From Anaeramoeba ignava BMAN (lineage: Eukaryota; Protista; Anaeramoebae): DNA of 64,000 nucleotides. The DNA lies in assembly GCA_028826165.1 (NCBI GenBank), contig JAPDFW010000064.1, positions 62,001 to 126,000 of the forward strand. The letters run 5' to 3'. Positions 1 to 64,000 of the stretch are shown one piece after another. Position numbers and translations under genes: made by a program. Position 1 is the stretch's first letter. Each line of letters begins with the position of its first letter. The notes under the pieces were generated by a model. It saw only the letters and a program-made list of their open reading frames with translations, was not told where the DNA came from and made no database searches.

Positions 1-618
1 ATTATAAATTTAATTATAAATTTAATTATAAATTTAATTATAAATTTAAGTATAATTATAAATTTAATTATAAATTTAATTATAAATATAATTTAATTAT
101 AAATATAATTATAAATTTAATTATAAATTTAATTATAAATTTAATTATAAATATAATTATAAATTTAATTATAAATTTAATTATAAATTTAATTATATAA
201 ATTTAATTATAAATTTTAATTATAATTATAAATTTAATATAAATTTAATTATAAATATAATTATAAATTTAATTATAAATTTAATTATAAATTTAATTAT
301 AAATATATTATAATTATAAATTTAAAATTTAATTATAAATATAAATATTATAAATTTAAAAATTTAATTATAAATTTAAATATAAATTTAATTATAAATT
401 TAATTATATAAATTTAATTATAAATTTAAATATAAATTTAATTATAAATAATTATAAATTTAATTATAAATTTAAATATAAATATAATTATAAATTTAAT
501 TATATAAATTTAATTATAAATATAATTATAAATTTAATTATAAATATAATTATAAATTTAATTATAAATTTAATTATAAATTTTGTATAAATTTAATTAT
601 AAATTTAATTATAAATTT
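1..618. repeat. Intronic 12-bp tandem array (ATAAATTTAATT)n in WASHC5 intron 1
   Basis: Direct reading. Variant unit ATAAATATAATT is interspersed. Confidence 0.95.
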
Positions 619-620
619 AC

Positions 621-830
621 AGGATTTTCAGAAATTTGATTTTCAACAAAACCTGATTGAGTTAAATATTGAAAATCCATTAAAATAAATTCATGAATTT
701 TTTCAGGTTCATTTTTATAAATTTCAGGAATATTATCAGAAAGTCTGAAAAGTTCTGCAATAATAGCATTTCCTCTACTAGAAAGTTTTAATGAAGTAAC
801 AATAGCTAAATTTACTTCTTCAATATCCAT
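621..830 (-). CDS. WASHC5: WASH complex subunit 5 / strumpellin, first exon; the gene continues beyond the window start through a repeat-filled intron
   Basis: MDIEE..SSRGNAIIAELFRLSDNIP..ILMDFQYL matches the strumpellin N-terminus (GNAIIAELLRLSEFIP...DFSYF). GT donor (gtaaat) at 620. Confidence 0.88.
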
Positions 831-839
831 TTAAATTTT

Positions 840-900
840 TTTAAGAAATGAAAAAAAAAATGAAAAAAAAAATAATTTTTTTAATTTTTTTTCATTTTTC
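840..900. promoter_or_regulatory. Compact bidirectional promoter with back-to-back TCATTTT initiator-like motifs
   Basis: AAATGAAAA (846, 858) faces WASHC5 and TTCATTTT (891) faces the CH-RasGAP gene. The two start codons are only about 100 bp apart. Confidence 0.55.
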
Positions 901-931
901 ATCTTTTCTTTTCTTTTTTTCTTTTTTTGAA

Positions 932-3623
932 ATGGATTCTAATTTACCTTTTGAAACAAAATCTTTATTAATTAAATTACTTTATGATCCTAATATAAAA
1001 ATTCTTCAAAAACCAAATGAAAACGTTTATAATATTGCACCACTTGATTTATTACTTAGATGGGTTAATTTTCATTTAAAAATAGAAAATCAACAACCAA
1101 TTAAAAATTTAACAACTTCTTTAAAAGTAAAAAAAAAAAAAAAGCAATTTAAAAAATTAAAAAGAAAAAGAAAAAGAAAAATTCAATTTAACGTTTTTTT
1201 TTTTAAATTAATTTTAATTATTTCTTTATTAAGGATGGAGTTGCTTTAGCTCATTTAATTCATAGATTAACTAAAGTTAAAATTGATTATGTTTTAAGTG
1301 AAAAAACAAATTTTCAAAGAATTGAAATTTTATTTCAAATTTTAAAAAATTTAGAATATCCAAATTTTATTTGTAAAACCCAAGATATTATTGATGTAAA
1401 TATTTTCTTTCTTTTTTGTTTTAAATTTTTTTTAATTTTTTTTAATTTTTTTTTTGTTTTTGCTAAATAGGGAAATGAAGCTCAAATAATTAAATTTTTA
1501 ATTAATTTATTTCTTTGGAAATCAAAACTCAAACCAAAAAATATAGAAAAAGTAAATAAATTTAATTATAAATTTTGAAATGAATTTAATTTTAAATTTA
1601 ATTATAAATTTAATTATAAATTTAATTATAAATTTAATTATAAATTTAATTATAAATATAATTATAAATATAATTATAAATTTAATTATAAATATAATTA
1701 TAAATTTAATTATAAATTTATTTTGAATTTAATTATAAATTTATTACAAATTTACTTATAAATTTAATTATAAATATAATTATAAATTTAATTATAAATT
1801 TAATTATAAATTTAATTATAAATATAATTATAAATTTAATTATAAATATAATTATAAATTTAATTATAAATTTATTTTGAATTTAATTATTAATTTAATT
1901 ATAAATTTAATTATAAATTTAATTATAAATATAATTATAAATTTAATTATAAATATAATTATAAATATAATTATAAATATAATTATAAATTTAATTATAA
2001 ATTTAATTATAAATTTAATTATAAATTTAATTATAAATTTAATTATAAATTTAATTATAAATTTAATTATGAATTTATTTATAAATTTAATTATAAATTT
2101 AATTATAAATTTAATTATAAATTTAATTATAAATTTAATTATAAATTTAATTATAAATTTAATTATAAATTTAATTATAAATTTAATTATAAATTTAATT
2201 ATAAATTTAATTATAAATTTAATTATGAATTTATTTATAAATTTAATTATAAATTTAATTATAAATTTAATTATAAATATAATTATAAATTTAATTATAA
2301 ATTTAATTATAAATATAATTATAAATATAATTATTAATTTTATTATAAATATAATTATAAATTTATTTTGAATTTATTTTGAATTTATTTTGAATTTATT
2401 TTGAATTTAATTATAAATTTATTTTTATAAATAGCTTCGCAAAAAACTCTCTCCAATTAATAACCAACAAAATAAATATTCCAAAACATCCCAACTCATA
2501 TCCAAATTCTCACCATCACAAACAAATCAGACGAACGGAATGAAAATAACACAACAATATCAACAACAAGAACGAAACAATACACAACCATCATATGTAT
2601 CAACAAGTCCCAACATACAATCACACAATTCACCTGATCATTTTTTTCCGAAATCAAGACAACCCTTTTCGAATTTAACAAAAACAACAACAACAACAAC
2701 ACAAAGTCATTTTCAACCGCAAAGACTTGGCCCAAGAACCTTTTCATCAGGACAAACACCTTCATATCTTCCACAAGAAAAATCGGAAATTTCTAAGCAA
2801 ATTGAGCAAAATATTCAACAGGAAAAAAACAAAACTTATCATCTTAATCAAGAATTTATTGAAGCACTTGAAATGGCGCAAAAATCACTAATTCAAGAAG
2901 AAGTTCCTGAAAAAATTACTGATATTTTAACAAAATCTGATCCAAAAAATTCCAACGAATATCCTTTTCTCATCAATGATTTTCTTGAAAAACTAATTGA
3001 TAATCCATTTGTCCAATCATGTCATCACAAAATCGCATTTGAAATGCCAGAAGCCGTTAACAAAGAGCAAATATCAGCTTTACTTACATTTTCTCGTTTA
3101 AGCAAAAGTGTTGTTTTTCAATTCCAATATTTGCAGAAACAACTGAAGCAAATCTTCGGATTAATTGGCCAATCTTTACCTCAACCAAGTGCTAAACTTG
3201 CTGAACTTTCCCAGAAATTCTTCCACTTTTCATCCTCAAAAAAAAAATTACTTCCTGTCAAAGAATATATTTCCAAATTATTTTTTGTCGAAATTCTCAA
3301 AATTTTGAATATTCTTAATTTACCTTTAGAAGATATTGTCAAATCATTAGTTCCTATTTTCCGTCAATTCCCTCGTGTTTTTAATGACTCTCCTTTTCTT
3401 TTCTCAATTTTGGACCAAGTTTTACAAGCACTTACTTCAAATACTACTTTTTTAACCAAAAGAAATGATTTCGAATTTTTGATATTCTCATTCTTTCTGA
3501 AATTTCTTGAATGCATTGTATTTAAAAAAGAATTCCGCAATTTTTTTGTTCAGGATCTTCTCCAACTAAAAAATGGTAATTAATTTATTTATTTCTTTAT
3601 TTCTTTCTTTCATGTTAAAAAAA

Positions 3624-3656
<33 letters not shown>

Positions 3657-5929: not shown

Positions 5930-8253
5930 TTATTTGATATAACGATGAATTCTTTGGAAATGTTGAGAACGAATTTCACTTAAAGCTCTTTCTAATTGGT
6001 CAGTAATTTCTTTTAATTCATGGAAATCACAATACATAGTGAATATTTTATCATCTGAAGTAGTTATTCTAATAATATAATAAGGTTGAAATTGTTCTCT
6101 TAATTTACGACTTGCGAGTTGAACATCAAGTCTCCATTCCATTGTTTTTAAATAAGGTAATTCAAAAGTCATTTTATTCAAGAATTTTCTTATTGGTGAA
6201 TTTTGTTGTTCATATTGATCTATCATGTAAATTCTTAATTCTTCTTCTATTTGTATAACTTTTAAAAAATCTCCAAATTCTTCTTTTGATATTAAAGTTT
6301 TTGAACTTTGTGTGTATAAATATGTTATTGATTCTATGCATTTTTGAATTACTTCAATATCTACTTGTAATTTTTCTGCTGCTTTGAGTAAGACTCTTGG
6401 TTTTGGATTTCCCAAAATAAATTTCATTGTAATATTAACGAATTCTTTTCCAACTTTTTAAGAGAATTTTAACAAGAAATTTTATAAATAATTTTATATA
6501 TAATTTTATAAATAATTTTATAAATAATTTTATATATAATTTTATAAATAATTTTATAAATAATTTTATAAATAATTTTATAAATAATTTTATAAATAAT
6601 TTTATAAATAATTTTATAAATAATTTTATAAATAATTTTATAAATAATTTTATATTAAATTTTATAAATAATTTTATAAATAATTTTATATTTAATTTTA
6701 TATTTAATTTTATAAATAATTTTATATATAATTTTAATAATAATTTTATAAATAATTTTATAAATAATTTTATTAATAATTTTTATATATAATTTTATAA
6801 ATAATTTTATAAATAATTTTATAAATAATTTTTATAAATAATTTTATAAATAATTTTATATTAAATTTTATAAATAATTTTATAAATAATTTTATATATA
6901 ATTTTAATAATAATTTTATTAATAATTTTATAAATAATTTTATTAATAATTTTATATATAATTTTATAAATAATTTTATAAATAATTTTATAAATAATTT
7001 TTATAAATAATTTTATAAATAATTTTATAAATAATTTTATAAATAATTTTTATAAATAATTTTATAAATAATTTTATAAATAATTTTATAAATAATTTTA
7101 TAAAATAATTTTATAAATAATTTTATAAATAATTTTATAAATAATTTTATAAATAATTTTATAAATAATTTTATAAATAATTTTATATTTAATTTTATAT
7201 TTAATTTTATAAATAATTTTTATAAATAATTTTATATTAATTTTTATATTTAATTTTTATAAATAATTTTATATTTAATTTTATATTTAATTTTATAAAT
7301 AATTTTATATTTAATTTTATAAATAATTTTATATTTAATTTTATAAATAATTTTATAAATAATTTTATAAATAATTTTATATTTAATTTTATAAATAATT
7401 TTATAAATAATTTTATAAATAATTTTATAAATAATTTTATATTTTAATTTTATAAATAATTTTATAAATAATTTTATAAATAATTTTAAAAATAATTTTA
7501 TAAATAATTTTATAAATAATTTTATAAATAATTTTATAAATAATTTTATATTTAATTTTATAAATAATTTTATAAATAATTTTATATATAATTTTATAAA
7601 TAATTTTATAAATAATTTAATAAATAATTTTATAAATAATTTTATAAATAATTTTATAAATAATTTTTATATTTAATTTTATAAATAATTTTATAAAATA
7701 ATTTTATATTTAATTTTATAAATAATTTTATAAATAATTTTATATTTAATTTTATATTAAATTTTATAAATAATTTTATAAATAATTTTTATAAATAATT
7801 TTATAAATAATTTTATAAATAATTTTATAAATAATTTTATAAATAATTTTATAAATAATTTTATAAATAATTTTATAAATAATTTTATATTTAATTTTAT
7901 AAATATTTTTATAAATAATTTTATAAATAATTTATATTTAATTTTATATTTAATTTTATATTTAATTTTATTAATAATTTTATAAATAATTTTATAAATA
8001 ATTTTATAAATAATTTTATAAATAATTTTATAAATAATTTTATAAATAATTTTATAAATAATTTTATAAATAATTTTATAAATAATTTTATAAATAATTT
8101 TATAAATAATTTTATTAATAATTTTATAAATAATTTTATAAATAATTTTATAAATAATTTTATAAATAATTTTATAAATTGTTTACACTCAACAGGTATT
8201 GATTTAAGAAAACTAAGTTCATTAATTTGTTGTTGAGTTAAAATTGAAACCAT
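5930..8253 (-). CDS. COMMD2: COMM domain-containing protein 2 (two exons: 8187-8253 and 5930-6453)
   Basis: Spliced product MVSILTQQQINELSFLKSIPVE-F-GKEFVNITMKF...YTQSSK...EWRLDVQLASRKLR...LERALSEIRSQHFQRIHRYIK follows the COMMD2 pattern (EWRLDVQLASRSLR...RRVVRNIK). Confidence 0.92.
6480..8180. repeat. Intronic 12-bp array (TTTATAAATAAT)n in the 1.73-kb COMMD2 intron
   Basis: Intron 6454-8186. The repeat is read directly. Confidence 0.95.
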
Positions 8254-9285: not shown

Positions 9286-9394
9286 TTTAAGAAAAAAATT
9301 GGAAAGAGAAAAATGAAAAAAATGAAAAATTAAAAAATTGAAAATAAAAAAATTTTTTTTTCTTTTTCTTTTTTCATTTTTTTTTTTTTTTAAA

Positions 9395-11403
9395 ATGCAA
9401 AATAATTCTAAAATTAATTCTTCTCAAAAAATTCAAGAATTTGAATCTTTTATTAATGAAAAACTTAAACCAGATCTTCAAAAAATTCTTGATTTAAGAG
9501 ATTCTATTTATACAAAAATTTCTAATTAGTATTTATAATTAAATTTATATCAAAATTTATAACTAAATTTATAATTATATTTATAATTAAATTTATAATT
9601 AAATTTATAATTATATTTATAATTATATTTATAATTATATTTATAATTATATTTATAATTAAATTTATAACAAAATTTATATCAAAATTTATAATTAAAT
9701 TTATAATTAAATTTATAATTAAATTTATAATTAAATTTATAATTAAATATATAATTATATTTATAATTATATTTATAATTATATTTATAATTATATTTAT
9801 AATTATATTTATAATTATATTTATAATTATATTTATAATTATATTTATAATTATATTTATAATTAAATTTATATCAAAATTTATAATTATATTTATAATT
9901 AAATTTATAATTAAATTTATAATTATATTTCTAATTATATTTCTAATTAAATATATAATTATGTTTATAATTATATTTATAATTAAGTTTATAATTAATT
10001 TTATAATTATATTTATATCAAAATTTATAATTATATTTATAATTAAATTTATATCAAATTTATATCAAATTTATAATTAAATTTCTAATTAAATTTATAT
10101 CAAAATTTATAACTAAATTTATAATTATATTTATAATTAAATTTATAATTAAATTTATAATTATATTTATAATTATATTTGTAATTATATTTATAATTAA
10201 ATTTATAATTATATTTATAATTAAATTTATAATTATATTTATAATTAAATTTATAACAAAATTTATATCAAAATTTATAATTAAATTTATAATTAAATTT
10301 ATAATTAAATTTATAATTAAATTTATAATTATATTTATAATTAAATTTATATCAAATTTATATCAAATTTATAATTAAATTTCTAATTAAATTTATAATT
10401 AAATTTATATCAAAATTTATATCAAAATTTATAATTATATTTATAATTAAATTTATAATTAAATTTATAATTAAATTCATAATTAAATTTATAATTAAAT
10501 TTATAATTAAATTTATAATTATATTTATAAATAAATTTATAATTATATTTATAATTAAATTTATATCAAAATTTATAATTAAATTTATAATTATATTTAT
10601 AGTTAAATTTATAATTAAATTCATAATTAAATTTATAATTAAATTTATAATTAAATTTATAATTATATTTATAATTAAATTTATAATTAAATTTATAATT
10701 ATATTTATAATTAAGTTTATAATTAAATTTATAATTAAATTTATAATTAAATTTATAATTAAATTTATAATTAAATTTATAATTATATTTATAATTATAT
10801 TTATAATTATATTTATAATTAAGTTTATAATTAATTTTATAATTATATTTATATCAAAATTTATAATTATATTTATAATTAAATTTATATCAAATTTATA
10901 ATTAAATTTATAATTAAATTTATATCAAAATTTATATCAAAATTTATATCAAAATTTATATCAAAATTTATAGTTTAATTCTTAAAAATAATCTTGAAAT
11001 TTTGGAAGAAATAAATTCAACTGAATTAACAACACTTATGGATTTTGGAGCAAATATATTTGTTCAAACAAAAGTGTAAAAGAAAACTTTTTTAAAATTT
11101 ATTTAAAATCAGTTAAAAAAATCAATTTTAAAAAAATCTTCTTTTTTTTGCTTTTATTTTTGCTTTGTTTTTAGACATGATACTTCAAAATTATTTGTTG
11201 ATATTGGCGCAAATGTTTTTCTTGAATTTACTAGAAAAGGTGCTATTAATTTTATTGAAAAACAAGAAAAAATTCTTAATGAACAAGCTGATGAATTAAC
11301 TGAAAAAGCTGCTAAAATTAAAGCAAATATTCAAACAATTTCTCAAGGAATTTATGAATTAATGAATATAAATGAAAAAGAAAAAGAAAAATATAGAAAA
11401 TGA
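9395..11403 (+). CDS. UXT: UXT-like alpha-type prefoldin subunit (3 exons: 9395-9528, 10974-~11075, 11175-11403)
   Basis: KIQEFESFINEKLKPDLQKILDLRDSIYTKISNY|LILKNNLE..MDFGANIFVQTKV|HDTSKLFVDIGANVFLEFT matches the UXT/prefoldin-alpha pattern. Confidence 0.88.
9529..10973. repeat. Intronic 12-bp array (TTTATAATTAAA / TTTATAATTATA / TTTATATCAAAA)n in UXT intron 1, with a higher-order duplication
   Basis: GT at 9529 and AG at 10972-10973. The rare variants ...ataactaaa... and ...ataacaaaa... recur at about 9560/10110 and 9668/10254. Confidence 0.93.
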
Positions 11404-11498: not shown

Positions 11499-14400
11499 AT
11501 GGATTTAAAAGAAGAAATAATTAATTGGATGAGTCACGTTATTCAAGAAGAAATTTCTAAAAATATTATTCAATTCTCAATTCAACTTTGTTCTCTTATT
11601 AATTCAATTCAACCAAACACAATAAAAACGATTTCCAAGTAAATCTTTTTCGAATTTTAAATTGAATTTTAAATGAATTTTATAAATAAATTTTATAAAT
11701 GAATTTTAATTTTAAATGAATTTTAATTTTAAATCGAATTTTAATTTTATAAATGAATTTTAAAATGAATTTTAATTTTAATTTTAAATGAATTTTAATT
11801 CGAATTTTAATTTTATAAATGAATTTTAAAATGAATTTTAAATCGAATTTTAATTTTAATTTTAATTTTAAATCGAATTTTAATTTTAATTTTAATTTTA
11901 ATTTTAATTTTAATTTTAATTTTAAATGAATTTTATAAATAAATTTTAATTTTAATTTGAATTTTAATTTGAATTTTAATTTTAATTTTAATTTTAATTT
12001 TAATTTTAATTTTAATATTAATTTTAATATTAAATCGAATTTTATAAATGAATTTTATAAATCGAATTTTATAAATGAATTTTATAAATGAATTTTAGTT
12101 CTTCTTCTGAAAATTTAACTCAATTTATTAATGCATGCCAAAATCTTGGAATCAAAAACAACCAATTAATTACTTCCCAAGAAATTATTAATCAAGATGA
12201 AAAATTTTTTCAATTCATTTCCCTTTTAAAAAATTATTCAAATCAAAAAATCAAAAAACAAGAAAAAAAAATCAAAGAAGAAAAAACAATAACAAAAACA
12301 ATTATTTGGAGTATTTGCCCAATTAAAGACACTGAAATAAAGGGATTTGTTTTTATTATTTATCAACACAAAACAAGGAATATTTTTGTTTACTCAAGTC
12401 CACAATACGCAAGTATTTCAAAATCAAAAGAAATAGAAACTTCACTTCACAAAATAATCGAAGAAAAAGATCATTTTGATTCAAAACCAAATCATATTTC
12501 TTTTGATTCTTCAATTGATGCTTTTGTTCTGATTCGTTTTGAATCTTCTTATTTTATTGAATCAACAATTTCTTTCCAAAATTTAATTGATTCTAACAGC
12601 TCTTTTCTTTCACAAATCCAAACCTTATTTAACCCAAATCCACAATCAAAACCCAATATTTTTTTATCTTTAAAAAAATTGCTTGAGCAAAATTATCAAA
12701 ATACTAATGCTTTAAAAGAACTTCTTCTTTCTTTTGAAAAGAAAAATTTTTCATTAATTATTCCTGTCAAATTTGAAAAATTAACTTCTTCTTCATTAAA
12801 TCCAAAAATTATTCAAGTTCTTCTAATATTCAATTCTAAAAAATTCCAATTACAAAAAGAATCCAAAGATTCTCTTGTTTTTGAAGCTTCTATTTCTCAA
12901 ATTCAGAATGTTTGTAGATTAAATGATTTTTTTTTTCAATAATTTATTCATTTAATTTATTTTTATATTTGATTAGATTTCATTTGATCAAGAAAAAACT
13001 TTTTTACAAATTGAGGTTATGGATTCACATCAAAAAATTGTCCAATGCAAAATATTTACTGGAATCACATTATTTGGCATGATTTATCAAACTTTTAATT
13101 CTCTATTAGGTTATTAATCAAAAAACAAAACAATATTTTTATTAAATTTTCATTTAAAAAAAAAATAATTATATATATATATATTATATAGAAAAATCAA
13201 ATTCCGAAAAAAAAGAAAAAAAGGATTCTTTCCCTCTAATTTTTTCCAAGAAACAAGATCTATTTATTCATAAATCAAATTTGTTAAAAGGAAGATGGTC
13301 AAATCTTTTATCCAAAATTGATATGAATCAAAATCAAAATCAAAATCAAAATCAAGAAGATTTTCCAAATTCACTCAGTTTGGAAAATTTTATAGATTCG
13401 ACATCTTCAGAAATAAAATCAAATAAATGGAAAGATATTGTGATCAAACAATTTGGACAAAGTCAAATCACTGATTGTCGTCTTCATCTCGAAAATGAAA
13501 ATACTCATAAAAAAACACAACTTCCAGTTTTATTGCAATTTTTCCCAACATCTCTGCATATAATAATATTTGATTCCACAAAAATTGTGGTTCCTTTTAG
13601 CAAACAACTCGAAATTTTATTCAACAAATCAAAATATGAAATTGAATTTAAAACTCCATCAAAAAATATTGTTTTAACAACTTCCTCCTTATTAAATCTA
13701 TATTGTTTTGGCAAAACCTATCAATTAATCCAGAGATACAAAGGAAGTTCTGCAGAAAATTATGTAATTGATGGAGAAATTATGGGAACTGAAGAAGAAA
13801 TCAAAGCAATAACACTTCGGTGTTTCAACAAAGAACATGCAAATTTCCAAATCAAATTCAAAACTCTTTCAGCAGAAGAATATGATTTAGGAATCATTTC
13901 ATTAGCCAAAAGCCATTTTACGATTTTTTCTCAATCTCATCAATATCAAATGAATTGGAACGAGTTTGTCTTCAAATCTTCTGTTGATGATAAAGATTGT
14001 TTTGTGATTCAAATGGAATTTAAATTGGGACAGAAAACCAAAATATTACAAATGCAATCCACTTCACAAAACAATACAAAAATTTTGTATCAGTGTTTCG
14101 AACTATTTCAGCATGAAAGTACTGGACAGAATTTAGTTTTTTCAGTTCCCAAAATTGAAACTTCTGTGCTTATTCGGAATTTAGATTTGAATATTCCCAA
14201 AAAATATCGAATTCCGTTATCTTCTGATCGTTTAAGTTTAAATAAAGAAAAAACCAAATTGAAGATTAATGAAGATTTATCTGATTTGAAAATGTTGCCC
14301 TATCTCCAAATACAACAAAATTTCCTCAATTATCTCCCAACAGAATTTGTTTTCAAATTTGAAGAAATTAAATCAAAACCAAAATCAAAAATATTAAACA

Positions 14401-21896: not shown

Positions 21897-21971
<75 letters not shown>

Positions 21972-22090
21972 ATATAAAAAATAAATAAATAAATAAATAA
22001 AATAAACAAATAAAATAAAATAAAAAAAATAAATAAATAAACAAATAAATAAAAATAAATAAATAAAAAACAAATAAATAAATAAACAAA

Positions 22091-22121
<31 letters not shown>

Positions 22122-33620: not shown

Positions 33621-33759
33621 TTCTTTTTTAAATTTGTAGTTTGAATTTTTAAGTTTTTTTTTTTTTTGAAAGAAAAAAAATGAAAAAAATTAAAATTAAA
33701 AATGAAAAATTTTTGTTTTGTTTTTTTAAGAAAAGATCAAAAAGAAGAATTAAGAATTC

Positions 33760-34110: not shown

Positions 34111-34169
34111 AAAATTTTTTTCATTTTTTTCATTTTTTCATTTCATTTTTTGATAATATTTTTTTTAAA

Positions 34170-39050: not shown

Positions 39051-39061
39051 AAAAAAATATT

Positions 39062-39130: not shown

Positions 39131-39138
39131 TTTGGAAA

Positions 39139-44335: not shown

Positions 44336-44366
<31 letters not shown>

Positions 44367-44976
44367 AGAATTGTCTTCAAATTGATCAAACTTGAAATAA
44401 ATTTTTGAAAATAAGAATTTAAAAATAAAAAGGATTTTAAAAAGTGGAAAAAGTGGAAAAATTTTCAAATTGATCAAATTAATAATTAAAATTAATTTTA
44501 AAATTAAAAATAAAATTAAAATTAAAATTAAAAATTAAAATTAAAAATTAATATTAAAATTAATATTTAAAATCAAAATCAATATTAAAATTAATAAATG
44601 AAGATCCAAAAGAAAAAAAGAAGAAAGAAAAAAGAAAAAAAAAACACGTCAAAAAGATCAACAAAAGAAAATAATAAATAAAAAAAAAAATAATAAAAAA
44701 TAATTACGCGATTGCTAAAGAAATTTGTTTTTCAACAAAAGCAGCAGAATTATCAACTTCTAAATGAGATTGAGTGCGCGGAATTTGAGACATAATTTTC
44801 ATTTTTTTTGCTTGTCTTTTTGAACCTTTGAATAAAATAAGAAAAGGTTCATTAAAGTGTAAAATGTCTTTAAGTGGTGATAAAACTGCAACTGCTTCTT
44901 TCGTTGTTTTGATTCGTTTTAAATACCCATTTACTTTGTTTTTGGGGATTTGTATTGCATTCGGTGAATTTCCCAT
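42612..44976 (-). CDS. N-myristoylation-motif PAS/PAC-domain protein with a C-terminal coiled coil (exons 44708-44976 and 42612-43377)
   Basis: MGNS N-terminus. EAVAVLSPLKDILHFNEPFLILF is a PAS core. SFDLRMKTLSGELFWAHVSL is a PAC motif. The in-frame splice is GC|T across intron 43378-44707. Confidence 0.75.
43395..44010. repeat. Intronic 12-bp array (TTTTAAATCAAT / TTTTATATCAAT)n
   Basis: Direct reading. Confidence 0.9.
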
Positions 44977-48800: not shown

Positions 48801-49130
48801 TTGGAAAATTTTTTTATTTTTTTGGATTAATTAAATTTTATTTTATAATTTTATTATTATAATAAATCTCCCTTTATTTTTAATTTAAATTTGAATTAAT
48901 TATAAATTTAAATTTTAAATAAATATTTAATTTTAATCTAATTTAATCTAATTTAATCATTCTGAAAAATTTTTTTATTTTTTGGATTAATCAAATTTTA
49001 TTTTATAATTTTATTATTATAATAAATCTCCCTTAATTTTTAATCTAAATTTGAATTAATTATAAATTTAAATTTTAAATAAATATTTAAATTTAATCTA
49101 ATTTGATTATTTGGGAAAAATTTTTTTATT
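45850..49130. repeat. Intergenic satellite: about 19-20 tandem copies of a 160-174-bp AT-rich unit
   Basis: Landmark AATAAATCTCCCTT at about 46001, 46175, 46335, 46498, 46658, 46818, 46979, 47152, 47325, 47485, 47658, 47826, 47999, 48172, 48344, 48517, 48688, 48861 and 49021. Confidence 0.95.
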
Positions 49131-53226: not shown

Positions 53227-56200
53227 TTAATTATTTAAATTAATTTGAAAATTATTAATTAAAAAATTGTTCATCTTTTGTTTTTGTAATTTTGGAGAAT
53301 TTTCAATAAAAGAATTTTCTTCAATTGAATTTAATTCTGGTGATCTTTCTTCAATTAGGGATTGATCAAAATTTAATCTTTTTTTTTGAGGTTTAATTAA
53401 TTCATTTGTTTTTTTTTGTTGTATTTCAGATTCATTTAAATTTAAGAAGAATTTTTGTTTTGGATTTTGAATTGGATTTTTTTTTGGATTTTGAATTTTA
53501 TTAATTTGAATTTGATTTTGAATTGAATTTTGAATTGGATTTTGAATTGGATTTTGAATTTGATTTTGAATTGGAATTGAATTTTGAATTGGATTTTGAA
53601 TTGGATTTTGAATTTTATTAATTTGAATTTGATTTGGAATTGAATTTTGAATTGGATTTTGAATTGGATTTGGAATTGGATTTTGAATTGAATTTTGAAT
53701 TGGATTTTGAATTGGATTTTGAATTGGATTTGGAATTGGATTTGGATTTTGAATTTTATTAATTGGAATTGGATTTGGAATTGAATTTTGAATTGGATTT
53801 TGAAAGAAATTCCCAATATTTGAAAAATTTAAATTTGGATCATCAAAAAAATTATTTTGGAATTCTTTTGTTTTTTCTGTATTTGTTGAATCAACTAACT
53901 TTTCTAATGAATAATTATTTGTTGTTGTTGTTTTTTCTTGTGATTGTAATTGAGATAAATTGGGTATTTTGTTTTCATTTCTTGTTTTAATAGAATTATT
54001 TGGATCAAAATTAATGAAATTGTAAACATTATTATTAAGTGATTTGAATGAAAAATTAATATTGTTATTAATTGTTTGTGTTTGAATATTTGAATTGGGA
54101 TTTTTGATTATGGTTTGTGGTTTTAAAAAATTTGTTTCTGAATTATTGATTGCTTGATTTGGAAAAATTGATTGATTCATATTATAAGAATTTCCAAATG
54201 TATTTCCAAAATTATTCATGTTTATATTCGGTTTTTTGTCTTTTTTCATTTCGGAATTATTTTTAAATGATTCTTGATGTATTTTTTGGAAAATTTCAAG
54301 ATTTGATTTTTGTTGTGGAAAATTCATTTTTAAATCAGGAAGAAAATCAACAAATTTTTCAGGAAATTTTGAAGAATCTTGAAGTGATTGTTTTCCATTT
54401 TCAAATTTAAAAGGAAATTTTGTTTGGTTGTCTAATTCTTGAGACTTTTGATTGAAATTAGGATTCAAATTCAAATTCAAATTCAAATTCAAATTTTGAT
54501 TTGGATTTTGAATTGGATTTTGAATTGGATTTTGATTTTGATTTTGATTTTGATTTTGATTTAAATTGAAATTTAATGGATTTCCAAATCTTGTTTGATA
54601 TTGAGTATTTACAGGTGATATGTTCCTTTCAAATACTCCAATTTTTGAATCTTTATTTCTTTCTTCGAAATGTAATTTTTTCAAATTTGATAATCTATCA
54701 ATAATTAATTGCTTTGTTTCAGAAACAGTTTTCTTTTGAAGTTCATTTCCATTTTTATTTTTATTTTCATTTTCTCTTGTGATTTCATTTTCTTTCTTAA
54801 TTTCATTTTCTTTAATTTCATTTTTATTTTTATTTCCATTTTCTTTCTTAATTTCATTTTCTTTCTTAGTTTCATTTTCTTTCTTGATTTCATTTTCTTT
54901 CTTAATTTCATTTTCTTTCTTGATTTCATTTTCTTTCTTAAGTTCATTTTCTTTCTTGATTTCATTTTCTTTCTTAATTTCATTTTCTTTCTTGATTTCA
55001 TTTTCTTTCTTAATTTCATTTTCTTTCTTAATTTCATTTTCTTTCTTAGTTTCATTTTCTTTCTTAATTTCATTTTCTTTCTTGATTTCATTTTCTTTCT
55101 TAATTTCATTTTCTTTCTTAATTTCATTTTCTTTCTTTTTAAATTTTGAAATAGTTGAATCATCTGATTGATTATCATCAGAATCAGTTACAAGAGAAAC
55201 ATAAACATTTCTCCAATTCATTCTAAAATAAGCTCTACTTTTCAATGCAGATATAGCTTCATAATGATTAATAAATGCAACAAAGCATTGAGCAGAAGCA
55301 CTCAATTTTGATTTGATAATATAAATTCCATTGGAACAAATTTTATAATTATTAAATAAAGATTTAATTGCATTTGGATTAACATGAAAAGGGAGATTTT
55401 TTAATCTTAAAACAGCATCTTGTGGGAATCTATTTATAAATTGTCGAGTTTCTTCACTTGTGATAATTTTTTTATCAGGATCTGCACTGTCATGTGGTTT
55501 GGCAATATTCATTGTATTAAATACCATTCCGTTAATTGTTTTTCCTTTTATATCCTTATAAGCAATAACAAGATTCCTGAAATCATTGAAATTAACAAAA
55601 GCACAATGTGTATGTTGAATTACTTTCACACTATTAATTTTTCCATATTTTGAACATAATCCTTCAAGTTTTTGTTCTGTAAATTCTTCTCCAACATCTC
55701 CAATCCACATTGTTTTGCTATGACAAAAATTCTTATCTAAATCATAATATCCTGTTAGTTCATCAACTTCTTCATTTGTTAGTTGACTCAAAAGATTGTT
55801 TTGTAATTCTTTATTGGGATCTTCATTTTTATTCGTGTTGTTTTGTAAGTTTTCTTGTTTTTTTACTGGTTCACTTTTTGTTTTTTTGACAATTTGTAAT
55901 CGATTTTGTTTTTGTTGCTTTTTATTTGGATTAGAAAGTGATTTAATTTTTTTGGCTATTTGTGGTGATTCTTTATTTTGATTTTTATTTTGATTTTTAT
56001 TTTGATTTTGATTTTTATTTTGATTTTGGTTTGCATTTTGATTTTGATTTTGATTTTGGTTTTGATTTTGTTTTTGATTTTGGTTTGCATTTTGAATTTG
56101 ATTTTGTTTTTGATTTTGATTTTGTTTTTGTTTTTGATTTTGTTTTTGATTTTGAATTTGATTTTGTTTTTGATTTTGTTTTTGATTTTGGTTTGCATTT

Positions 56201-59200
56201 TGATTTGCATCTTTGTTTCGTTTATTTCTTTTTCTCTGCTTTTTTCTCTTTAATTTCTGTTTCTTATTTTCAATTTTTTCTAGTCTTCTTTTTTCTGCTT
56301 CCAATTCAGCAAGTCTTTGTTTTTCTTTTTGTTCTTCTTGAAACTTTTTCAATTGTTCATCTCTTTCAATTTTTTCAATTTTGAAAGTATAATCATTAAT
56401 TTTCTTTTGGATTTTAATTTTTTTATCAGCAATAAATTTCTTTGTTCTATTAATAAGCTTGGAGATTTCTTTCTTGTATTGTTTTTCATAGATGATATTT
56501 TGAAAAGAAAATGTGTGATTATGCTCTTTTTTGGCATAATAATATTTATATTCATTTTCTAATTGAATCATGAAAAATTTTGAGATGAAAACTAAGAAAA
56601 GCATATATGGTTCTTGAAGATCGGAATTGAAAAATTCAAAAGTATTTTGTGCTTGTTCCAACTTGATTTCTAATTGTTCTTTGTTTATTCTTGAATTTTT
56701 TCCATTGTCAATTTTTTTGGTGGTTATATCATTGATTTTTCCATCTGCAAAAAGTATTTCACAATTAATATCTGCAAATTTTGAAATTTCTTTAAAAAGT
56801 TCAAGTGCTTTTTCTTTTGTAGATATTTCATTTGGAGAAATTGTGAGTTTATATTCTTGATTTTTCTTATTGATATTTTGCTTTTTTTTCTGTGTTTCTT
56901 GTTCTTGTTCTTTTGTTTCAGGAACTACTATAAATTTATCAAAAAGATCAAATTTAATGAAGAGTTTTTCAATATTTCCTGAAATTAATTGAGCTCGATC
57001 TCTTAATTGATTTTGATTTTGATTTTGATTTTTGATTTTGATTTTGATTTTTATTTTGTTGAGGATTATTTCTTTGTCCTTTTCCTTTTCCTCTTCTTTT
57101 TTTTTGTGACTTCTTTTTTGGAATTTGAAAATTTTGTGAATTGGATGGTTCTTTTATATTTAGATATTTACTTTTTTTATAAAGAAGAAAATCCATAAAT
57201 CTTGAAGAATTTTTCTTGAAATATTTATCAATATAATTTTCCAAAAAATTGATATTTTGTGAAAGAATTTTTTCAATATTTTGATTTTCCCATTGCTCTA
57301 TTAAAAATTGAGAAAGAATTTCAGGAGTAATTGAAATTGAATACCAAAGATTTTTTTCATCAACATCTTTGAATTCATTTTCTTGATTTTTTGAATTTTC
57401 TTGATTTTTTGAATTTTCTTGATTTTTTGAATTTTCTTGATTTTTTAAATTTTCTTGATTTGATTGAGTTTTTTCAATTTTATGATAATTTCCCAGCTTT
57501 TGTAATTGATAAATTGTCTCTAATTCTTCCATTGTTCGTGGTTGATTTAAGCTATTTAACATTTGAAATTTCTGAATTTCTTTCAATTCTTGAATTTTTT
57601 CTTCAAGTTTGTCCATATATGGTTTTTCATTTATTATATTTTTTTGTTCATCTTGATTGATTTGATCTTCTTGATGTAAATTGATATTTTCTTGTTCTTG
57701 ATAGAGTAAAATTTGGATTTGATTAAAAAGAGTATTTGCTTCTTCATTATCTGGATCTAAACGAAGTAAATTATATAAATCTATTTTTTATCAAAATATA
57801 TATATAATCAATGAATATTATTGCTTTGTTTTTGAATTGGGGAATTTTAAATTAATTTTACCTTCTAACGCAAGTAAATTTTGTTGAGATTCAATAAAAG
57901 CAGTTGCTCTTCTTAAAAGAGATTTTTTATTTTTAGGATTAAATTTAAGAGATCTTGTGCAAATTTGAATAGCTTTATCATATTCTTTTAAATGAAGAAG
58001 ACAAAGTGCTTCATTTGATAAAATTGAAGACAATCGTTTAAAATCATATTTTGGTGTATTCAGAAATGATTTATTATATAAAATAAGTGATGGTGCCCAA
58101 TCATTTTGTTGAAGATATTGTTTGGAATCTTTGGCCATTTGTTTTCCAGTTTTAATTGCCTAATTTAAATAAAAAAAACAAAAAAAAATATATTTTAACT
58201 TTCAATCCAAAATTAATTGAACAATATTTACAACTGATTTTCTTCTAAATCTTTCAATTTCAACCTCTTTTTCTCGAATTAATGTTGAAGGATCTTGAGA
58301 AGAAAAAACTTTTTTTGCAAATTTTCTATTTCCGATTGTGTTTTCATTTGTATTCGGAAATTTGGTTGAATGATGAAGTAAATCTAAATTTGAATCTAAA
58401 TTTAAATCCAATTTTATTTCTGTATTATATTTAACTTCATTATCAAATTCATTATCAGATGGACAATCACTACTTGTCCAAAAAACTTGATTTTCTTCTT
58501 CAAATTTTGATTTTTCAGATTCCGTAATTAATCGATCAAAATGTTCTATTTCATTATTATTATTATTATCACCATTATCATCTTCAATAACTTTTTGAAT
58601 AGCAGGCATTAAAAAATGTGTTCCAAATTTATCAATCATTTTTTTCTTAATTATTCTAATTTTAATATTTTCTTTTTTATTTTCATTTTCCGTACATCCA
58701 AAAAAATTTATAAAATTTTCTAGTTTATTTTTGGGAATAATATCTGTTATTTGGGTTTTTTGAAGAGCTTGAAGACGTTCACCTTTTTGTGTTAGGAGTG
58801 TGACTGTTTTTGAAATTGTTGAGATATATGGAAATTTAAATATATTTTCAATTTGATTTGAATTTTGATTTTGATTTTGATTTTGAATTTGATTTTGATT
58901 TTGATTTTCAATTTGATTTTGATTTTGATTTTGAATTTGATTTTGATTTTGATTTTGATTTTGATTTTGATTTTGATTTTCAATTTGATTTTTATTTTGA
59001 TTTTCAATTTCATTTTCATTTTGATTTTGCTTTAGGAGAAATAAATTAATATTTGGTTTCTGATTCTTTTGTAAAAAATTTTCTTCAATTTGTCTAAATT
59101 CTTTTTTAAATATTGCTTCAATAATATACATTTTCAATGAATGTTGTGGATCTGATTCATTTGAAAAATCAATTGAAGTATAAGCAGAACTTTCGATTTT

Positions 59201-61983
59201 GAACATTTCAAAAAATAATTTATGTGTAGGTTCAGCTGATCTTTGTTCAAAAACAGAAGTAGGAATAGGTATTTCTTGGAAATTGCATAAATGATAATCA
59301 TTTTCATTAAATTCTTTTGGAAAATAATTTTCAATTTCATTTGCAATGACTAAAGATGGTGGAAAAAGTGAATTTTGGTTTTCTTGATCTACATTATTAG
59401 ATTCATTAATAGAGTGATTATCTTTTTTGAGTTGAATATTTGATGTATTGTTTTGATTTTGATTTTCTGTTTGATTTTGATTTTCTGTTTTATTTTTATT
59501 TTTATTTTGATTTTGGTTTTGATTTTGGTTTTGGTTTTGATTTTGAATTTGATTTTGAATTTGATTTTGAATTTGATTTTGATTTTTCATTTCTCCTTTT
59601 TCATTTCTCATTTCTCCTTTTCTCCAAATTTTTGTATTATATTTTCTGAATGCAAAAAATAAAAGTATCATTAATCGATGATTTTGAAGCCAAAATTGAT
59701 GATTGTTCCATATATATTCAATTGCTTCATTTTCCTTCTCTGTATATTTATTTGAAAATATGTGGGTTGGTAAATTTTTCTTTCCAAGAAAAATATTTGG
59801 GACTTCTGGATTAAAAGCAATTGCTCTTTGTAATAATTTATATAAAATATAAACTTTTTTTTTCAATTCTTTTCTGTTTGATTTTTGGATTTTTTTAATT
59901 TCTTGAATTTCCTGATTTGTAAGTTGAGTTGTATCTAATTCATTTTGAATTTCTTTCATAGTATAATTTAATTTGAATTGAGGCTCATTTTTTTGAAATT
60001 GTTCTTTTATAATTTCATTGAAAATGGAATAATTTGATGAATAATTTTTTGATTCTTTGGAAAGAAAAGAAAAAAATTTAAATATTTTCTTAAATAATGA
60101 AAAAGTTATGAATAAAATTTTTTACTTTGAGATTCAAGTAAAAACAGAAGATAATTTTTGATTCGTGACTTTGCTTTGATATTTTCAATTGTTTTTTGGA
60201 ATTTTAGAACAACTTTTGTATATTTCCATGTTGTAGAAGCATCTCCTGGGAATTTTTTGTAAAAATCAGAAGCTTCTTTGTTTCTTTTTAAAGATAATAA
60301 AATTGGCATTATATAGAAACGAACACCAAGTGGATCTTTAGGTGAAATTTCTAAAATATCATAATATTCTTTTAGGGCTTGTTCTTTATTATCTAAACCT
60401 TTCCATAAACCTTAAATAAATAAATAATTTTATAAAATAATTTTATAAATAATTTTATATTTAATTTTATAAATAATTTAATAAATAATTTTATAAATAA
60501 TTTAATAAATAATTTTATAAATAATTTTATAAATAATTTTATAATTAATTTTATAAATAATTTTATAAATAATTTAATAAATAATTTTATAAATAATTTT
60601 ATATTTAATTTTATAAATAATTTAATAAATAATTTTATAAATAATTTTATATTTAATTTTATAAATAATTTTATAAATAATTTTATAAATAATTTTATAA
60701 ATAATTTTATAAATAATTTTATAAATAATTTTATAATTAATTTTATAAATAATTTTATAAATAATTTTATAAATAATTTTATAAATAATTTTATAAATAA
60801 TTTTATAAATAATTTTATAAATAATTTTATAAATAATTTTTAATTAATTTTATAATTAATTTTATAATTAATTGAATAATTAGTTTTTATATATAATTTT
60901 TTAAATAATTTTTTATTTTAATTTTTGTTTTAATTTTCAATAGTTATTTTTTAAATAATTTTAAAATAATTTTATAAATAATTTTATAAATAATTTTATA
61001 AATAATTTTATAAATAATTTTATAAATAATTTTATAAATAATTTTATAAATAATTTTTATAAATAATTTAATAAATAATTTTATATTTAATTAAATTTTT
61101 ATTTAATTTTATATTTAATTTTATAATTAATTTTATAATTAATTTTATATTTAATTTTATATTTAATTTTATAAACAATTTTATATTTTGTTTTTATAAA
61201 TAATTTTTAAAAATTTTATAAAAAATTAAAAAAAATCAAAAATTTTTCAAATTTTAAAAAAAAATTTTATAAAAGAAATTTTATAAATAATTTTATAAAT
61301 AATTTTATAAATAATTTTATATTTAATTTTATAAATAATTTTATAAATAATTTTATATTTAATTTTATAATTAATTTTATATTTAATTTAATAAATAATT
61401 TTATAAATAATTTTATAATTAATTTTATAAATAATTTTATATTTAATTTTATAAATAATTTAATAAATAATTTTATAATTAATTTTATAAATAATTTTAT
61501 AAATAATTTTATAAATAATTTTATAATTAATTATTTTTTGAGGAATTTTTTTCTTTTTGAAATTTGGATACACCAAGCATAATCATTTTTCATCTTCAAA
61601 AGAGAAATAATTGAAGAATGAGTTTCAAGAGAATTTAAATCAATTTTTAAATTTTCAATTTTTTTCTTTTTCATTTCAATAGTTTGATTTAGATATCTTA
61701 AACATTCTTCTGGAATTGTTGATTCTTGTGCAAGGTAAACTAATGATTTAATACTTTTGGGATAAAATTTTAAAGCCAATTCTGCATTTTTGATTCTTTC
61801 AATTCGAGATTTTTCATGGATTACTTTTTGAAGAATATTTTTTGCTCTTTTTTTATTCAAAATTTTTTGTTCTTTTTCATTTTCATTTGCTAATGTAATT
61901 CTCATCATTTTTTCTAATTCTTCCTTTGTAAATTCATTTAATAATTCTTCTGGAATATTAATTTGTTGTTGTTCTTGATTCAT
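53227..61983 (-). CDS. Very large multi-exon protein: ST7-like helical/TPR N-terminus, TPR domain, coiled coil, two RRMs and N/Q-rich tails; frameshift at about 57000
   Basis: ATG at 61983 and intron 60411-61571. [81 protein letters not shown]1 MWIGDV..CAFVNF and RRM2 [20 protein letters not shown] and PIQN repeats. Confidence 0.75.
60420..61530. repeat. Intronic 12-bp array (TTTATAAATAAT)n, same family and orientation as the COMMD2 intron
   Basis: Direct reading. Confidence 0.92.
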
Positions 61984-62216
61984 AATTTGAAAAAAAAAAT
62001 GTGAAAAAAAAAAATGAAAAAAAAAATTCAAAAAAAATTTTTTTCAATTAAAAAAAACAACAAAAAAAAAAAAAAATTTTTAAAAAAGAAAAAAACCAAA
62101 CTTAATTTTAATTTTAATTTTAATTTTAATTTTAATTTTAAATTTAATTTTAATTTTAATTTTAATTTAGAATTTTAATTTTAATTTTAATTTTAATTTA
62201 AATTTTGGAATTCAAA

Positions 62217-63270
62217 TCATTTTTTTTGTTTTGGTAAATGAAATGGAAAGAAAACTTCTTTAAAATTATTCAATATTCCTTTTGAATAAGGATTGCGAAT
62301 TTCTTTTTCTGTTGGAATATTTTTTAATTGGGAAATAAAAGTAACATTTTCATGAGTTCGTAAAAAAAGTTCTTTTAATTTTTCATTTGGAATTTTAAAT
62401 TTATTTGGATCGATTGGTTTTCTTTGAGAAAGTGGTTTATTTTCTTCCATTTTTTCATATTTGGCAATTAGTCTTTTTGTTCTTGTGAAGCTTTAAAATT
62501 TTCAAACATATGAATTTCTTCTTTTAAATCAGCATATCTGAAAGTTTCATTTGTTGTTGTATTAGTTGCAATCAAATATAAATGATATGCCACAAAAGCA
62601 AATAAAACAATTCCCATCATAAAAACCATAATCAATAATCCAAATAAAGCTCTATATTCAACAATGATATACTTATAAAGAAAATTTTAATTTTATATTT
62701 AATTTTAATTTTAATTTTGATTTTAATTTTAATTTTTTAAAATTTTTATTTTAATTTTAATTTTAATTTTTATTTTTAATTTTTTGATTTTAATTTTATT
62801 TTTAATTTTAATTTTAATTTTAATTTTAATTTTAATTTTAATTTTAATTTTAATTTTGATTTTAATTTAAATTTGATTTTAATTTTAATTTTAATTTGAT
62901 TTTAATTTTAATTTTAATTTGATTTTAATTTTATTTTTAATTTTAATTTTGATTTTAATTATAATTTTAATTTTAATTTTAATTTTATTATAATTATCTA
63001 CTCGAAGAATATGTGAAAAAGAGATTGGCGAAGGATTTCCATATTTATCAAAAAACACAAGATCTAAAATTGAACTATTTTTAACATTATAATATAAAAT
63101 TCGGAAAATAATATAACTTGCATAACTGCACATAATCATGTTTGCAATTAAAAATAAAACAAAATATCGATAATTATTTAATCCCATAGTATTTGCAACC
63201 CATCCACAATAGTGATCATAACGTGCAACACATTTGTTAACAAATCTACAATGTTTTGATCTTGCAGGTC
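62217..63270 (-). CDS. DHHC-family palmitoyltransferase (Swf1/ZDHHC4-like, DHYC variant), 3' exons; the 5' part lies beyond the window
   Basis: RPARSKHCRFVNKCVARYDHYCGWVANTMGLNNYRYF, YHLYLIATNTTTNE and NPYSKGILNNFKEVFFP. Intron at about 62673-63001 and a one-base homopolymer frameshift at about 62475. Confidence 0.9.
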
Positions 63271-63279
63271 TTTTTAAAA

Positions 63280-64000
63280 ATGATTATTAAAATGATTATT
63301 AAAATTTATTATTAAATTTATTATTAAATTTATTATTAAATTTATTATTAAATTTATTATTAAATTTATTATTAAAATTATTATTAAATTTATTATTAAA
63401 TTTATTATTAAATTTATTATTAAAATTATTATTAAAATTTATTATTAAATTTATTATTAAATTTATTATTAAATTTATTATTAAATTTATTATTAAAATT
63501 ATTATTAAATTTATTATTAAATTTATTATTAAAATTTATTATTAAATTTATTATTAAATTTATTATTAAAATTTATTATTAAAAATTATTATTAAAAATT
63601 TATTATTAAATTTATTATTAAAATTATTATTAAAATTTATTATTAAAATTATTATTAAAATTATTATTAAAATTATTAAAATTATTATTAAATTTATTAT
63701 TAAATTTATTATTAAAATTATTATTAAAATTTATTATTAAAATTATTATTAAATTTATTATTAAAAATTTATTATTAAATTTTATTATTAAATTTATTAT
63801 TAAATTTATTATTAAAATTTATTATTAAAATTATTATTATTAAATTTATTATTATTAAAATTATTATTAAATTTATTATTAAATTTATTATTAAATTTAT
63901 TATTAAAATTTATTATTAAATTTATTATTAAATTTATTATTAAATTTATTATTAAATTTATTATTAAATTGATTATTAAATTTATTATTAAATTTATTAT
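63280..64000. repeat. Intronic 12-bp array (TTATTAAATTTA)n in the DHHC gene
   Basis: Direct reading to the window end. Confidence 0.92.

Follow-up and report, generated by a model that had tools for sequence, protein, structure and literature searches.

A window of 64,000 nt from Anaeramoeba ignava BMAN (contig C65, A+T 82.6%), the whole stretch of DNA analysed here, was found to contain spliceosomal introns filled almost from splice site to splice site with tandem repeats, among which units of 12 bp predominate. These arrays are probably AT-rich satellite DNA that has overgrown the introns, with a few 12-bp families dispersed over hundreds of non-coding sites and with a period that is mainly inherited rather than set by a dedicated ruler.

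Repeats were called with Tandem Repeats Finder (TRF), by autocorrelation and by anchor spacing. An independent sample of 97 kb was taken from unrelated loci on six other contigs, giving 160 kb together with the window, and one extra 3.5-kb locus was sampled on contig C1 (C1:62933-66444). Genome-wide counts refer to the assembly of 42,843,398 bases in 147 contigs, and array lengths and unit spacings are given as they stand in this Nanopore-based assembly. Two repeat families recur throughout, F1 with the unit ATTATAAATTTA and F2 with the unit AAAATTATTTAT.

Tandem repeats made up 46% of the window and 30% of the 97 kb of independent loci by TRF, and base identity at a lag of 12 across the window was 0.50 against a background of about 0.38. 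Sixteen inflated introns of 0.2-5.6 kb, about one third of all introns in the window, held approximately 19.5 kb of array, or 30% of the window. The original prediction, made from the letters of the window, had described introns filled almost from GT to AG with tandem arrays, and this was borne out by the continuity of Pfam matches across the arrays and by the deposited FNTB protein. The large arrays of the window are listed below with their strand, the three intergenic ones last.

1-620, minus strand: intron 1 of the strumpellin/WASHC5 gene, cut at the window start; F1 array ATTATAAATTTA, 52 copies, TRF period 12; the exon at 612-830 (minus) matches Strumpellin hidden Markov model (HMM) positions 1-50, and GTAAAT stands on the minus strand at the array edge.
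1552-2434, plus strand: intron of a RasGAP gene, 883 nt; F1 array at 1556-2421, 73 copies, 98% fill; GTAAAT...ATAG with open frames on both sides; RasGAP and PH domains downstream, no Pfam continuity.
6454-8186, minus strand: intron 1 of a COMMD gene, 1,733 nt; F2 array at 6478-8179 (AAAATTATTTAT on the sense strand), 141 copies, 98% fill; the downstream exon matches COMM_HN 23-100 and COMM, and a 22-aa first exon gives the missing start; GT/AG.
9529-10973, plus strand: intron 1 of a UXT/prefoldin-like gene, about 1,445 nt; F1 array in reverse orientation (9516-10980), 122 copies; the exon at 11107-11400 matches Prefoldin 57-114; GTATTT...ATAG read by eye, so that the boundary is inferred.
11639-12098, plus strand: intron of 460 nt; 12-mer array GAATTTTAAATT with a higher-order period of 66, 97% fill (TRF); GTAAAT...TTTTAG, open frames of 64 and 280 codons.
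16920-22517, plus strand: PSMA7 intron, 5,598 nt; arrays at 16932-20256 and 21848-22514 with an ATAA base and TATATAAATAAA as 12-nt superperiod, and a transposon between them (about 20257-21847); Proteasome HMM 1-97 in exon 1 and 93-188 in exon 2.
23293-24952, minus strand: intron of a TMEM128-like gene, 1,660 nt; 5/22-nt array; upstream exon matches TMEM128 11-77; GT/AG, open frames.
29388-33161, minus strand: intron of an ankyrin-RasGEF gene, 3,774 nt; 13-mer array at 29397-29915 and 12-mer array ATTTTATTAATT at 30049-33129, 256 copies; ankyrin repeats at the end of one exon and the beginning of the following one; GTATTT...GTTAG.
34554-34753, plus strand: intron of a protein kinase gene, 200 nt; 18-mer array; Pkinase HMM 15-81 before and 101-154 after.
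39705-40782, plus strand: FNTB intron 1, about 1,078 nt; F1 array in reverse orientation (39739-40779), 87 copies; Prenyltrans HMM 1-132 before and 130-271 after; the deposited protein joins at aa 189.
41255-42180, plus strand: FNTB intron 2, about 926 nt; 6-, 5- and 11-nt arrays (ATTTTA, ATTTGG, ATTTTAATTTA); Prenyltrans HMM 130-271 before and 272-302 after; the deposited protein joins at aa 346.
43378-44706, minus strand: probable first intron of the so-called PAS gene; 11-mer array TTTAAATCAAT at 43393-44010 and smaller arrays; 3' splice site read by eye, no Pfam support, intron status inferred.
50730-51211, minus strand: intron of an ankyrin-repeat gene, 482 nt; (ATTAAA)n; Ank repeats on both flanking exons; GTAAAT...ATCAG.
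60411-61571, minus strand: intron of an ST7-like/TPR gene, 1,161 nt; F2 array (60420-61532), 92 copies, 96% fill; weak ST7 match on the upstream exon; GT/AG, open frames of 157 and 100 codons.
62672-63001, minus strand: intron of a DHHC gene, 330 nt; (AATTTT)n; DHHC HMM 14-93 before and 95-131 after.
63270-64000, minus strand: upstream intron of the DHHC gene, cut at the window end; 12-mer ATTATTAAATTT, one substitution from F1 (TRF); 3' splice site before the exon that starts at DHHC HMM 14.
33736-34115, no strand: intergenic array, 6/37 nt, between the divergent RasGEF and kinase genes; no same-strand exon pair (TRF).
38577-39055, no strand: array upstream of the FNTB start codon, 6/54 nt (TRF); the deposited FNTB protein starts at an ATG about 80 nt downstream.
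45875-49092, no strand: intergenic 173-bp satellite, 19 copies (TRF); no flanking exon pair.

The position of the arrays within introns was tested exon by exon using Pfam HMM coordinates, the exons being searched singly and not as joined sequence. Model coordinates continued across the arrays in PSMA7 (1-97 to 93-188), FNTB (1-132 to 130-271 to 272-302) and the DHHC gene (14-93 to 95-131), as well as in the kinase, COMMD, UXT, strumpellin, TMEM128 and two ankyrin genes; the RasGAP, CH-like, ST7-like and PAS introns showed no such continuity. The deposited A. ignava FNTB protein of 413 aa joins the window exons exactly at aa 189, across the 1.08-kb 12-mer array, and at aa 346, across the 0.93-kb 6/11-mer array. 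Twelve complete introns of 200-5,598 nt had GT/AG sites with open frames on both sides and consisted to 95-100% of array, from a few bases after the GT to a few before the AG. The remaining four of the 16 were the UXT intron and the probable PAS-gene intron, whose boundaries were read by eye, and the two introns cut at the window ends.

Intronic arrays started 0-35 nt past the 5' splice site and stopped 1-25 nt short of the AG. With arrays reaching nearly both splice sites, the branch point must lie within the repeat units. Read in the sense direction, the arrays contained AG 26 times and GT 36 times, compared with 117 and 140 expected from shuffling; GT occurred 244 times on the antisense strand. 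Units bearing G or C almost never carried both, and the sense strand of the intronic arrays carried G in four cases and C in four, so that a sense strand free of G is not the rule in the window. The depletion of AG and GT, for which about eight arrays are informative, may reflect the loss of units in which cryptic splice sites would otherwise arise.

The published annotation of A. ignava BMAN contains 32,108 introns with a modal length of 76 nt, an intron G+C of 8.1% and a longest intron of 4,168 nt (PMC11550330), and the genome's authors describe RNA-seq mapping to the A. ignava assembly. Tandem or satellite repeats in introns are not mentioned in that paper or its supplements, in the intein paper or in the A. 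pumila preprint, judged by the words tandem, satellite and RepeatMasker. Short introns of 59-138 nt, from loci L001-L009 and the window, were observed to be built mostly from tandem units of their own, 6, 8 or 13 nt long and present in 2-11 copies. Short mini-repeat introns and kilobase arrays thus form one continuum, the latter being its tail. A conserved 3' intron motif was considered as a seed for the arrays and rejected, as the short introns share no end beyond the AG.

By TRF the arrays contained 37-256 copies with 79-92% matches, and autocorrelation at lag 12 within arrays was 0.8-0.9. They have the marks of satellite or minisatellite families, with a defined unit arranged head to tail, occurrence at many loci and shared subvariants. 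It had been proposed that the units are intron-specific, which did not hold: after rotation and reverse complementation the arrays in WASHC5, RasGAP, UXT and FNTB (1-619, 1556-2421, 9516-10980 and 39739-40779) are one 12-mer, F1, in two orientations, and the COMMD and ST7-like/TPR arrays (6478-8179 and 60420-61532) share F2. F1 and F2 thus account for six of the nine period-12 arrays of the window and, extrapolated from the window, for about half of the genome-wide period-12 signal of the TATAAAT core that is not hexameric. Arrays of the same family were found in neighbouring genes on opposite strands. The predicted occurrence of arrays in both orientations was confirmed, both families being mixed relative to transcription, and a fixed orientation relative to transcription was accordingly discarded.

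Exact F1 in three copies had 2,979 matches in the genome compared with 634 for its mirror image, and exact F2 in five copies had 2,413 compared with 35. This gap between unit and mirror image indicates that abundance is specific to sequence and not to composition. The window was enriched 9-fold for F1 and 7.5-fold for F2 over its share of the genome matches.

The secondary variants of each family were also held in common. The top variant was ATTATAAATATA in all four F1 arrays and the double-substitution AAAATTAAATAT in all three F2 arrays, one of which lies on contig C1. Independent birth of arrays would not give common secondary variants. Their sharing across loci and contigs therefore suggests that the arrays are related by descent or inter-locus exchange, and that the period can be inherited. 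The extra C1 locus (C1:62933-66444) contains a Rab7-like gene that has very short exons, down to 6-9 codons, and one intron with 75 F2 copies. Inverted copies of a further, G-bearing 12-mer family, TTAAAATTGRAT, flank the 5' half of this gene 2.1 kb apart.

The register of the arrays was not strict. Between 5 and 15% of unit spacings measured by anchor spacing departed from 12 (11, 13 or 14), and dispersed 11- and 13-mer families built on the TATAAAT core were present at many loci. Other intronic arrays of the window had periods of 5/22, 6, 6/11, 13 and 18, and arrays of 11-, 13-, 14-, 16- and 173-nt units also reached kilobases. Nine arrays of the window had period 12. Among those that the original prediction gave as 12 nt, the PAS array has period 11, and the PSMA7 array is built on a 4-mer, with 12 nt as its superperiod. 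Blocks of 98-99% homogeneity stood beside diverged blocks, and 24-nt higher-order units were present; this is the look of satellites under slippage and unequal exchange. Degenerate array edges were considered as a sign of unequal crossing-over and set aside, since homogeneity was patchy with no consistent gradient.

To obtain a genome-wide period spectrum, three TATAAAT cores at fixed spacing were counted on both strands, and so was the mirrored core TAAATAT. The spaced-core matches were as follows.

Period 10: TATAAAT 53, mirrored TAAATAT 227.
Period 11: TATAAAT 1,526, mirrored TAAATAT 2,635.
Period 12: TATAAAT 48,587, mirrored TAAATAT 28,945.
Period 13: TATAAAT 829, mirrored TAAATAT 1,631.
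Period 14: TATAAAT 321, mirrored TAAATAT 2,064.

Perfect (TATAAA)n, with 16,589 matches genome-wide, contributed about 16,600 to each period-12 count. About 32,000 and about 12,000 matches were left, which exceeds the counts at periods 11 and 13 by a factor of 5 to 40. The excess of period 12, whose lack had been named beforehand as grounds for dropping the idea, is thus present genome-wide (48,587 against 53-1,526 at periods 10, 11, 13 and 14). It involves at least 10 distinct 12-mer units, G/C-bearing ones included, and upholds the expectation that period 12 occurs much more often than it would if arrays drifted freely among neighbouring periods.

The tally of arrays in the 160 kb, restricted to arrays of at least 120 bp, displayed a similar distribution, with 21 arrays (18.6 kb) at period 12, 19 arrays (8.4 kb) at period 6, five arrays (4.9 kb) at period 11 and almost nothing at periods 7, 9, 10 and 14. 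The 97 kb of independent loci contributed eight arrays at period 12, 12 at period 6, four at period 11 and none at 7, 9, 10 or 14. Four arrays were present at the extra C1 locus, three with units that bear G or C; all were essentially of period 12, one of them 12/23. All nine period-12 arrays of the window were intronic, and none of the three large intergenic arrays (periods 6/37, 6/54 and 173 nt) had period 12.

The core AATTTTA, counted at period 12 as the sole period, gave 85,555 matches, mostly (AATTTT)n. TTGATTT at a spacing of 12 nt gave 57,158 matches genome-wide compared with 61 for its mirror TTTAGTT. This core was rejected as a third test of period because it is confounded by coding Asn-Gln repeats. 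The TTGATTT matches of the window (37460-37983, 55978-56158 and 58853-58973) were observed to be coding AATCAA repeats on the sense strand, encoding Asn-Gln, which suggests a proteome very rich in N/Q hexanucleotide repeats.

The PSMA7 intron gives a view of array age and of the effect of arrays on gene models. The base period of its array is 4, on which a superperiod of 12 nt is superimposed, and the interior is degenerate and rich in A and C. The array is interrupted by a pogo/Tigger-like DDE_1 transposon (20257-21847) with terminal inverted repeats of about 38 nt, composed of tandem 19-mers, and TA flanks. The same repeat lies on both sides of the transposon, so the array is older than the insertion. 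The deposited PSMA7 model of 134 aa (gene 16569-22892, plus strand) ends in ...RYIAQVQQ followed by 17 residues read from the array and lacks exon 2 (22518-22892, Proteasome HMM 93-188), because the intron, at 5,598 nt, is longer than any in the annotation (maximum 4,168 nt). Other gene models are probably cut short by giant repeat introns too.

At 100-105 kb of contig C3 (L009:1-5354) a gene is duplicated in tandem, with a repeat period of about 3.66 kb. The exons of the two copies are 89-95% identical, and their homologous introns contain (TTTGAT)n arrays that measure 343 bp in one case and 360 bp in the other. The retention of arrays by duplicates, together with the transposon within an array, indicates that the arrays are persistent genomic DNA and not assembly noise. 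The duplicate pair offers an internal clock for array turnover. For a comparison of orthologous introns, the protein matches contained none recognizable as A. flamelloides.

If the arrays are dispersed satellite families, a new array would be seeded by copying from an existing array into an AT-rich intron, often at short range, by ectopic repair synthesis or template switching, by gene conversion or by reinsertion of circular repeat DNA. Growth and local homogenisation would follow by replication slippage and unequal exchange. Spread would halt at the constrained splice-site regions, and units making a sense-strand AG or GT would be purged. Substitutions would produce new units, and rarer period-changing indels would produce the 11- and 13-mer offshoots. 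What was observed directly is the arrays, their place in introns, the genome-wide excess of period 12, the units and secondary variants common to several loci, the imperfect register and the scarcity of AG and GT on the sense strand; the route of copying, growth by slippage and unequal exchange, and selection against AG and GT are proposed to account for these. Msh2-6 are reported to be present in Anaeramoeba (PMC10710043), so loss of mismatch repair is not needed as an explanation.

Several observations weigh against a mainly inherited period. The common variants could in principle come from recurrent mutation. The original prediction had noted that units differ by a few substitutions, which carries no signal: the mean distance among nine distinct units, at best rotation and orientation, was 3.14, compared with 2.96 for random AT-only 12-mers, of which 181 such classes exist. 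The space of AT-only 12-mers is saturated, and descent from a common 12-mer ancestor is therefore not demonstrable. Comparison of the flanks of the F1 and F2 arrays revealed nothing in common, and no copying intermediate or donor-recipient junction was seen. In the small sample, about 13 distinct units had period 12 compared with six at period 11 and five at period 13. Counted in bases, period 12 outweighed period 6 and greatly outweighed periods 18 and 24, which pure drift does not predict. Array lengths and units may also carry errors of the Nanopore-based assembly.

A first alternative is an intrinsic constraint to 12 bp, or to a 6-bp step, under which slippage or repair would favour 12-nt loops, or selection would act on a 12-bp property of DNA or chromatin, and different sequences would be driven to 12. 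The period-12 peak is indeed very sharp, and is so for the mirrored core as well (28,945 against 227-2,635); at least 10 distinct 12-mer units exist, some with G or C; periods 6, 12, 24 and 36 dominate the 160 kb with 7, 9, 10 and 14 nearly absent; and nine of nine period-12 arrays of the window are intronic. However, the contrast of the latter with none of three intergenic arrays is not significant, and much of the peak comes from F1, F2 and perfect (TATAAA)n. The spacings off 12 and the kilobase-sized 11-, 13-, 14-, 16- and 173-nt arrays also argue against a constraint, and the 5- to 70-fold difference between unit and mirror image is not predicted by a purely physical rule of period. Such a constraint is unlikely, if still a serious candidate. 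Doubtful to a similar degree is a preference of transcribed non-coding DNA for a 12-bp (and 6-bp) register irrespective of sequence, arising from a slippage or repair step or from selection on DNA or chromatin mechanics. If true, it would mean that unrelated sequences converge on 12 and that intron size is shaped by this convergence. The proposal of a dedicated, length-constrained or templated process was not supported, given the dispersed units, common variants, register slips, 11- and 13-mer families and the many units in both orientations. Telomerase-like templated addition is particularly unlikely, as at least 10 different 12-mers occur beside 4-, 5-, 6-, 11-, 13-, 18- and 173-nt arrays, in both orientations and all internal; a single templating RNA cannot give so many units in both orientations, which makes a templated process hard to reconcile with the data.

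It is quite improbable that the 12-mers are dimeric higher-order repeats of AT-rich hexamers. Hexamer arrays are highly numerous, with 19 in the 160 kb and with the large (TATAAA)n and AATTTTA counts given above, identity at lag 6 in the F1 arrays is 0.66-0.69, and 6+6 variants, for instance TTGATT+TAGATT, are clearly visible in TTGATT arrays. The window TTGATT arrays with such variants are, however, coding Asn-Gln repeats, and the halves of AT-only 12-mers match at 2-4 of six positions with a mean of about 2.6, compared with three for random sequence. Neither F2 nor the RasGEF unit gave a signal at lag 6, and period 18 is rare although trimers should accompany dimers. The arrays might instead have been delivered by transposition, with a minisatellite-bearing transposon of the Helitron type or an element resembling introners as the vehicle, and the introns themselves possibly created in the process. 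Such delivery would account for the same unit and variants at many loci on different contigs and has a precedent in C. elegans intronic periodic DNA derived from Helitron minisatellites (preprint 10.64898/2026.08.08.743475). We regard it as very unlikely given that the flanks of four F1 and three F2 arrays lack common sequence, inverted repeats or target duplications, that arrays abut unique exon-proximal sequence, and that several of the host introns lie within conserved domains of old genes. Helitron_like_N (PF14214) had no match in the genome, a weak result since it had no match in control genomes either. Finally, the arrays or their lengths might be artefacts of Nanopore-based assembly of extremely AT-rich DNA, and the 11/13 unit-length variants could partly be homopolymer errors. 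This has hardly any likelihood for arrays that are bounded precisely by splice sites of real genes (two of them annotated introns in the deposited FNTB model), that contain a transposon with intact inverted repeats in one case, that remain similar in duplicated genes, and whose units are common to thousands of loci. Dispersal of a few satellite families with a mainly inherited period therefore remains our preferred reading.

Two further features of repeat organization were noted. The intergenic 173-bp satellite has 89% identity and a 333-bp higher-order form, occupies the only large intergenic gap, and has a period unrelated to the intronic arrays. On contig C1, several asymmetric units were all in one orientation among the matches listed: F2 at nine loci over 1.6 Mb, (TATAAA)n at four, (AATTTT)n at five, and TTGATTT at 11 that lie within the first 270 kb. 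Five 10-kb samples of C1 contained 15 arrays with a strong excess of G over C on the plus strand compared with three of the opposite type. The one-sidedness of C1 may represent a chromosome-scale strand polarity of repeats or genes.

The architecture described here goes unmentioned in the genome papers searched, and comes from a recently sequenced, phylogenetically isolated eukaryote in which tandem repeats form approximately one third to one half of the sampled DNA. A practical consequence is that gene models break at giant repeat introns. Hundreds of kilobase-scale arrays in housekeeping genes constitute a compact system for the study of satellite spread between euchromatic sites, and provide a route to study how splicing copes with introns made of repeat only, in which neither a branch region nor a polypyrimidine region stands apart, and why a single repeat length prevails.

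The closest known counterparts among introns are those of the Drosophila Y-linked genes kl-3 and kl-5 (PMC6508621), which are likewise spliceosomal introns consisting mostly of simple satellite, nearly from splice site to splice site. The satellite is transcribed and spliced out in Drosophila, as it presumably is in A. ignava. The Drosophila introns are megabase-sized, have 5-7-bp units and belong to a few testis-specific genes with a dedicated expression programme, whereas those of A. ignava span 0.2-5.6 kb, lie in ordinary housekeeping genes and have mostly 12-bp AT-only units. The X-linked 1.688 and Rsp-like satellites of Drosophila (PMC7403614) and the satellites of Tribolium (PMC11610590) resemble the A. 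ignava families in that one family forms many short arrays in gene-rich DNA, including introns, with local and long-range spread and inter-locus exchange. Circular DNA and microhomology-mediated repair have been proposed for such euchromatic spread (PMC7403614, PMC11610590). Those satellites have units of 100-360 bp; the A. ignava units are 11-13 bp of nearly pure A+T, fill whole introns and make up 30-46% of the sampled sequence.

The PATCs (periodic An/Tn clusters) of C. elegans (PMC4947018; Helitron-minisatellite origin in preprint 10.64898/2026.08.08.743475) are similarly extended, periodic, AT-rich non-coding DNA that is concentrated in introns and derived from tandem minisatellites. They have a 10-bp helical period, are degenerate, originate from Helitrons and have a shown anti-silencing function in germline genes. 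The A. ignava repeats, by contrast, are sharply defined, and hardly any have period 10 (53 matches compared with 48,587 at 12, and no period-10 arrays in 160 kb), so any mechanical logic would need to differ from that of PATCs. A register preference, if it exists, would be a 12-bp counterpart of the curvature-encoding 10-bp PATCs with a different physical logic.

Among AT-rich protists, Plasmodium falciparum has 10.7% of its genome in 1-9-bp microsatellites (preprint 10.1101/560516). It shares with A. ignava an extreme A+T content, slippage-prone low-complexity non-coding DNA and coding Asn/Gln repeats, but 1-6-bp units dominate and introns are short. Dictyostelium discoideum has a comparable load of AT-rich simple sequence, again with 1-6-bp units and short introns. 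Unlike in both of these, the 12-bp minisatellites of A. ignava extend over kilobases and are responsible for the long tail of intron length. What is new here is a protist in which short-unit, AT-only satellites are a main determinant of intron size, with a striking 12-bp period that is probably inherited.

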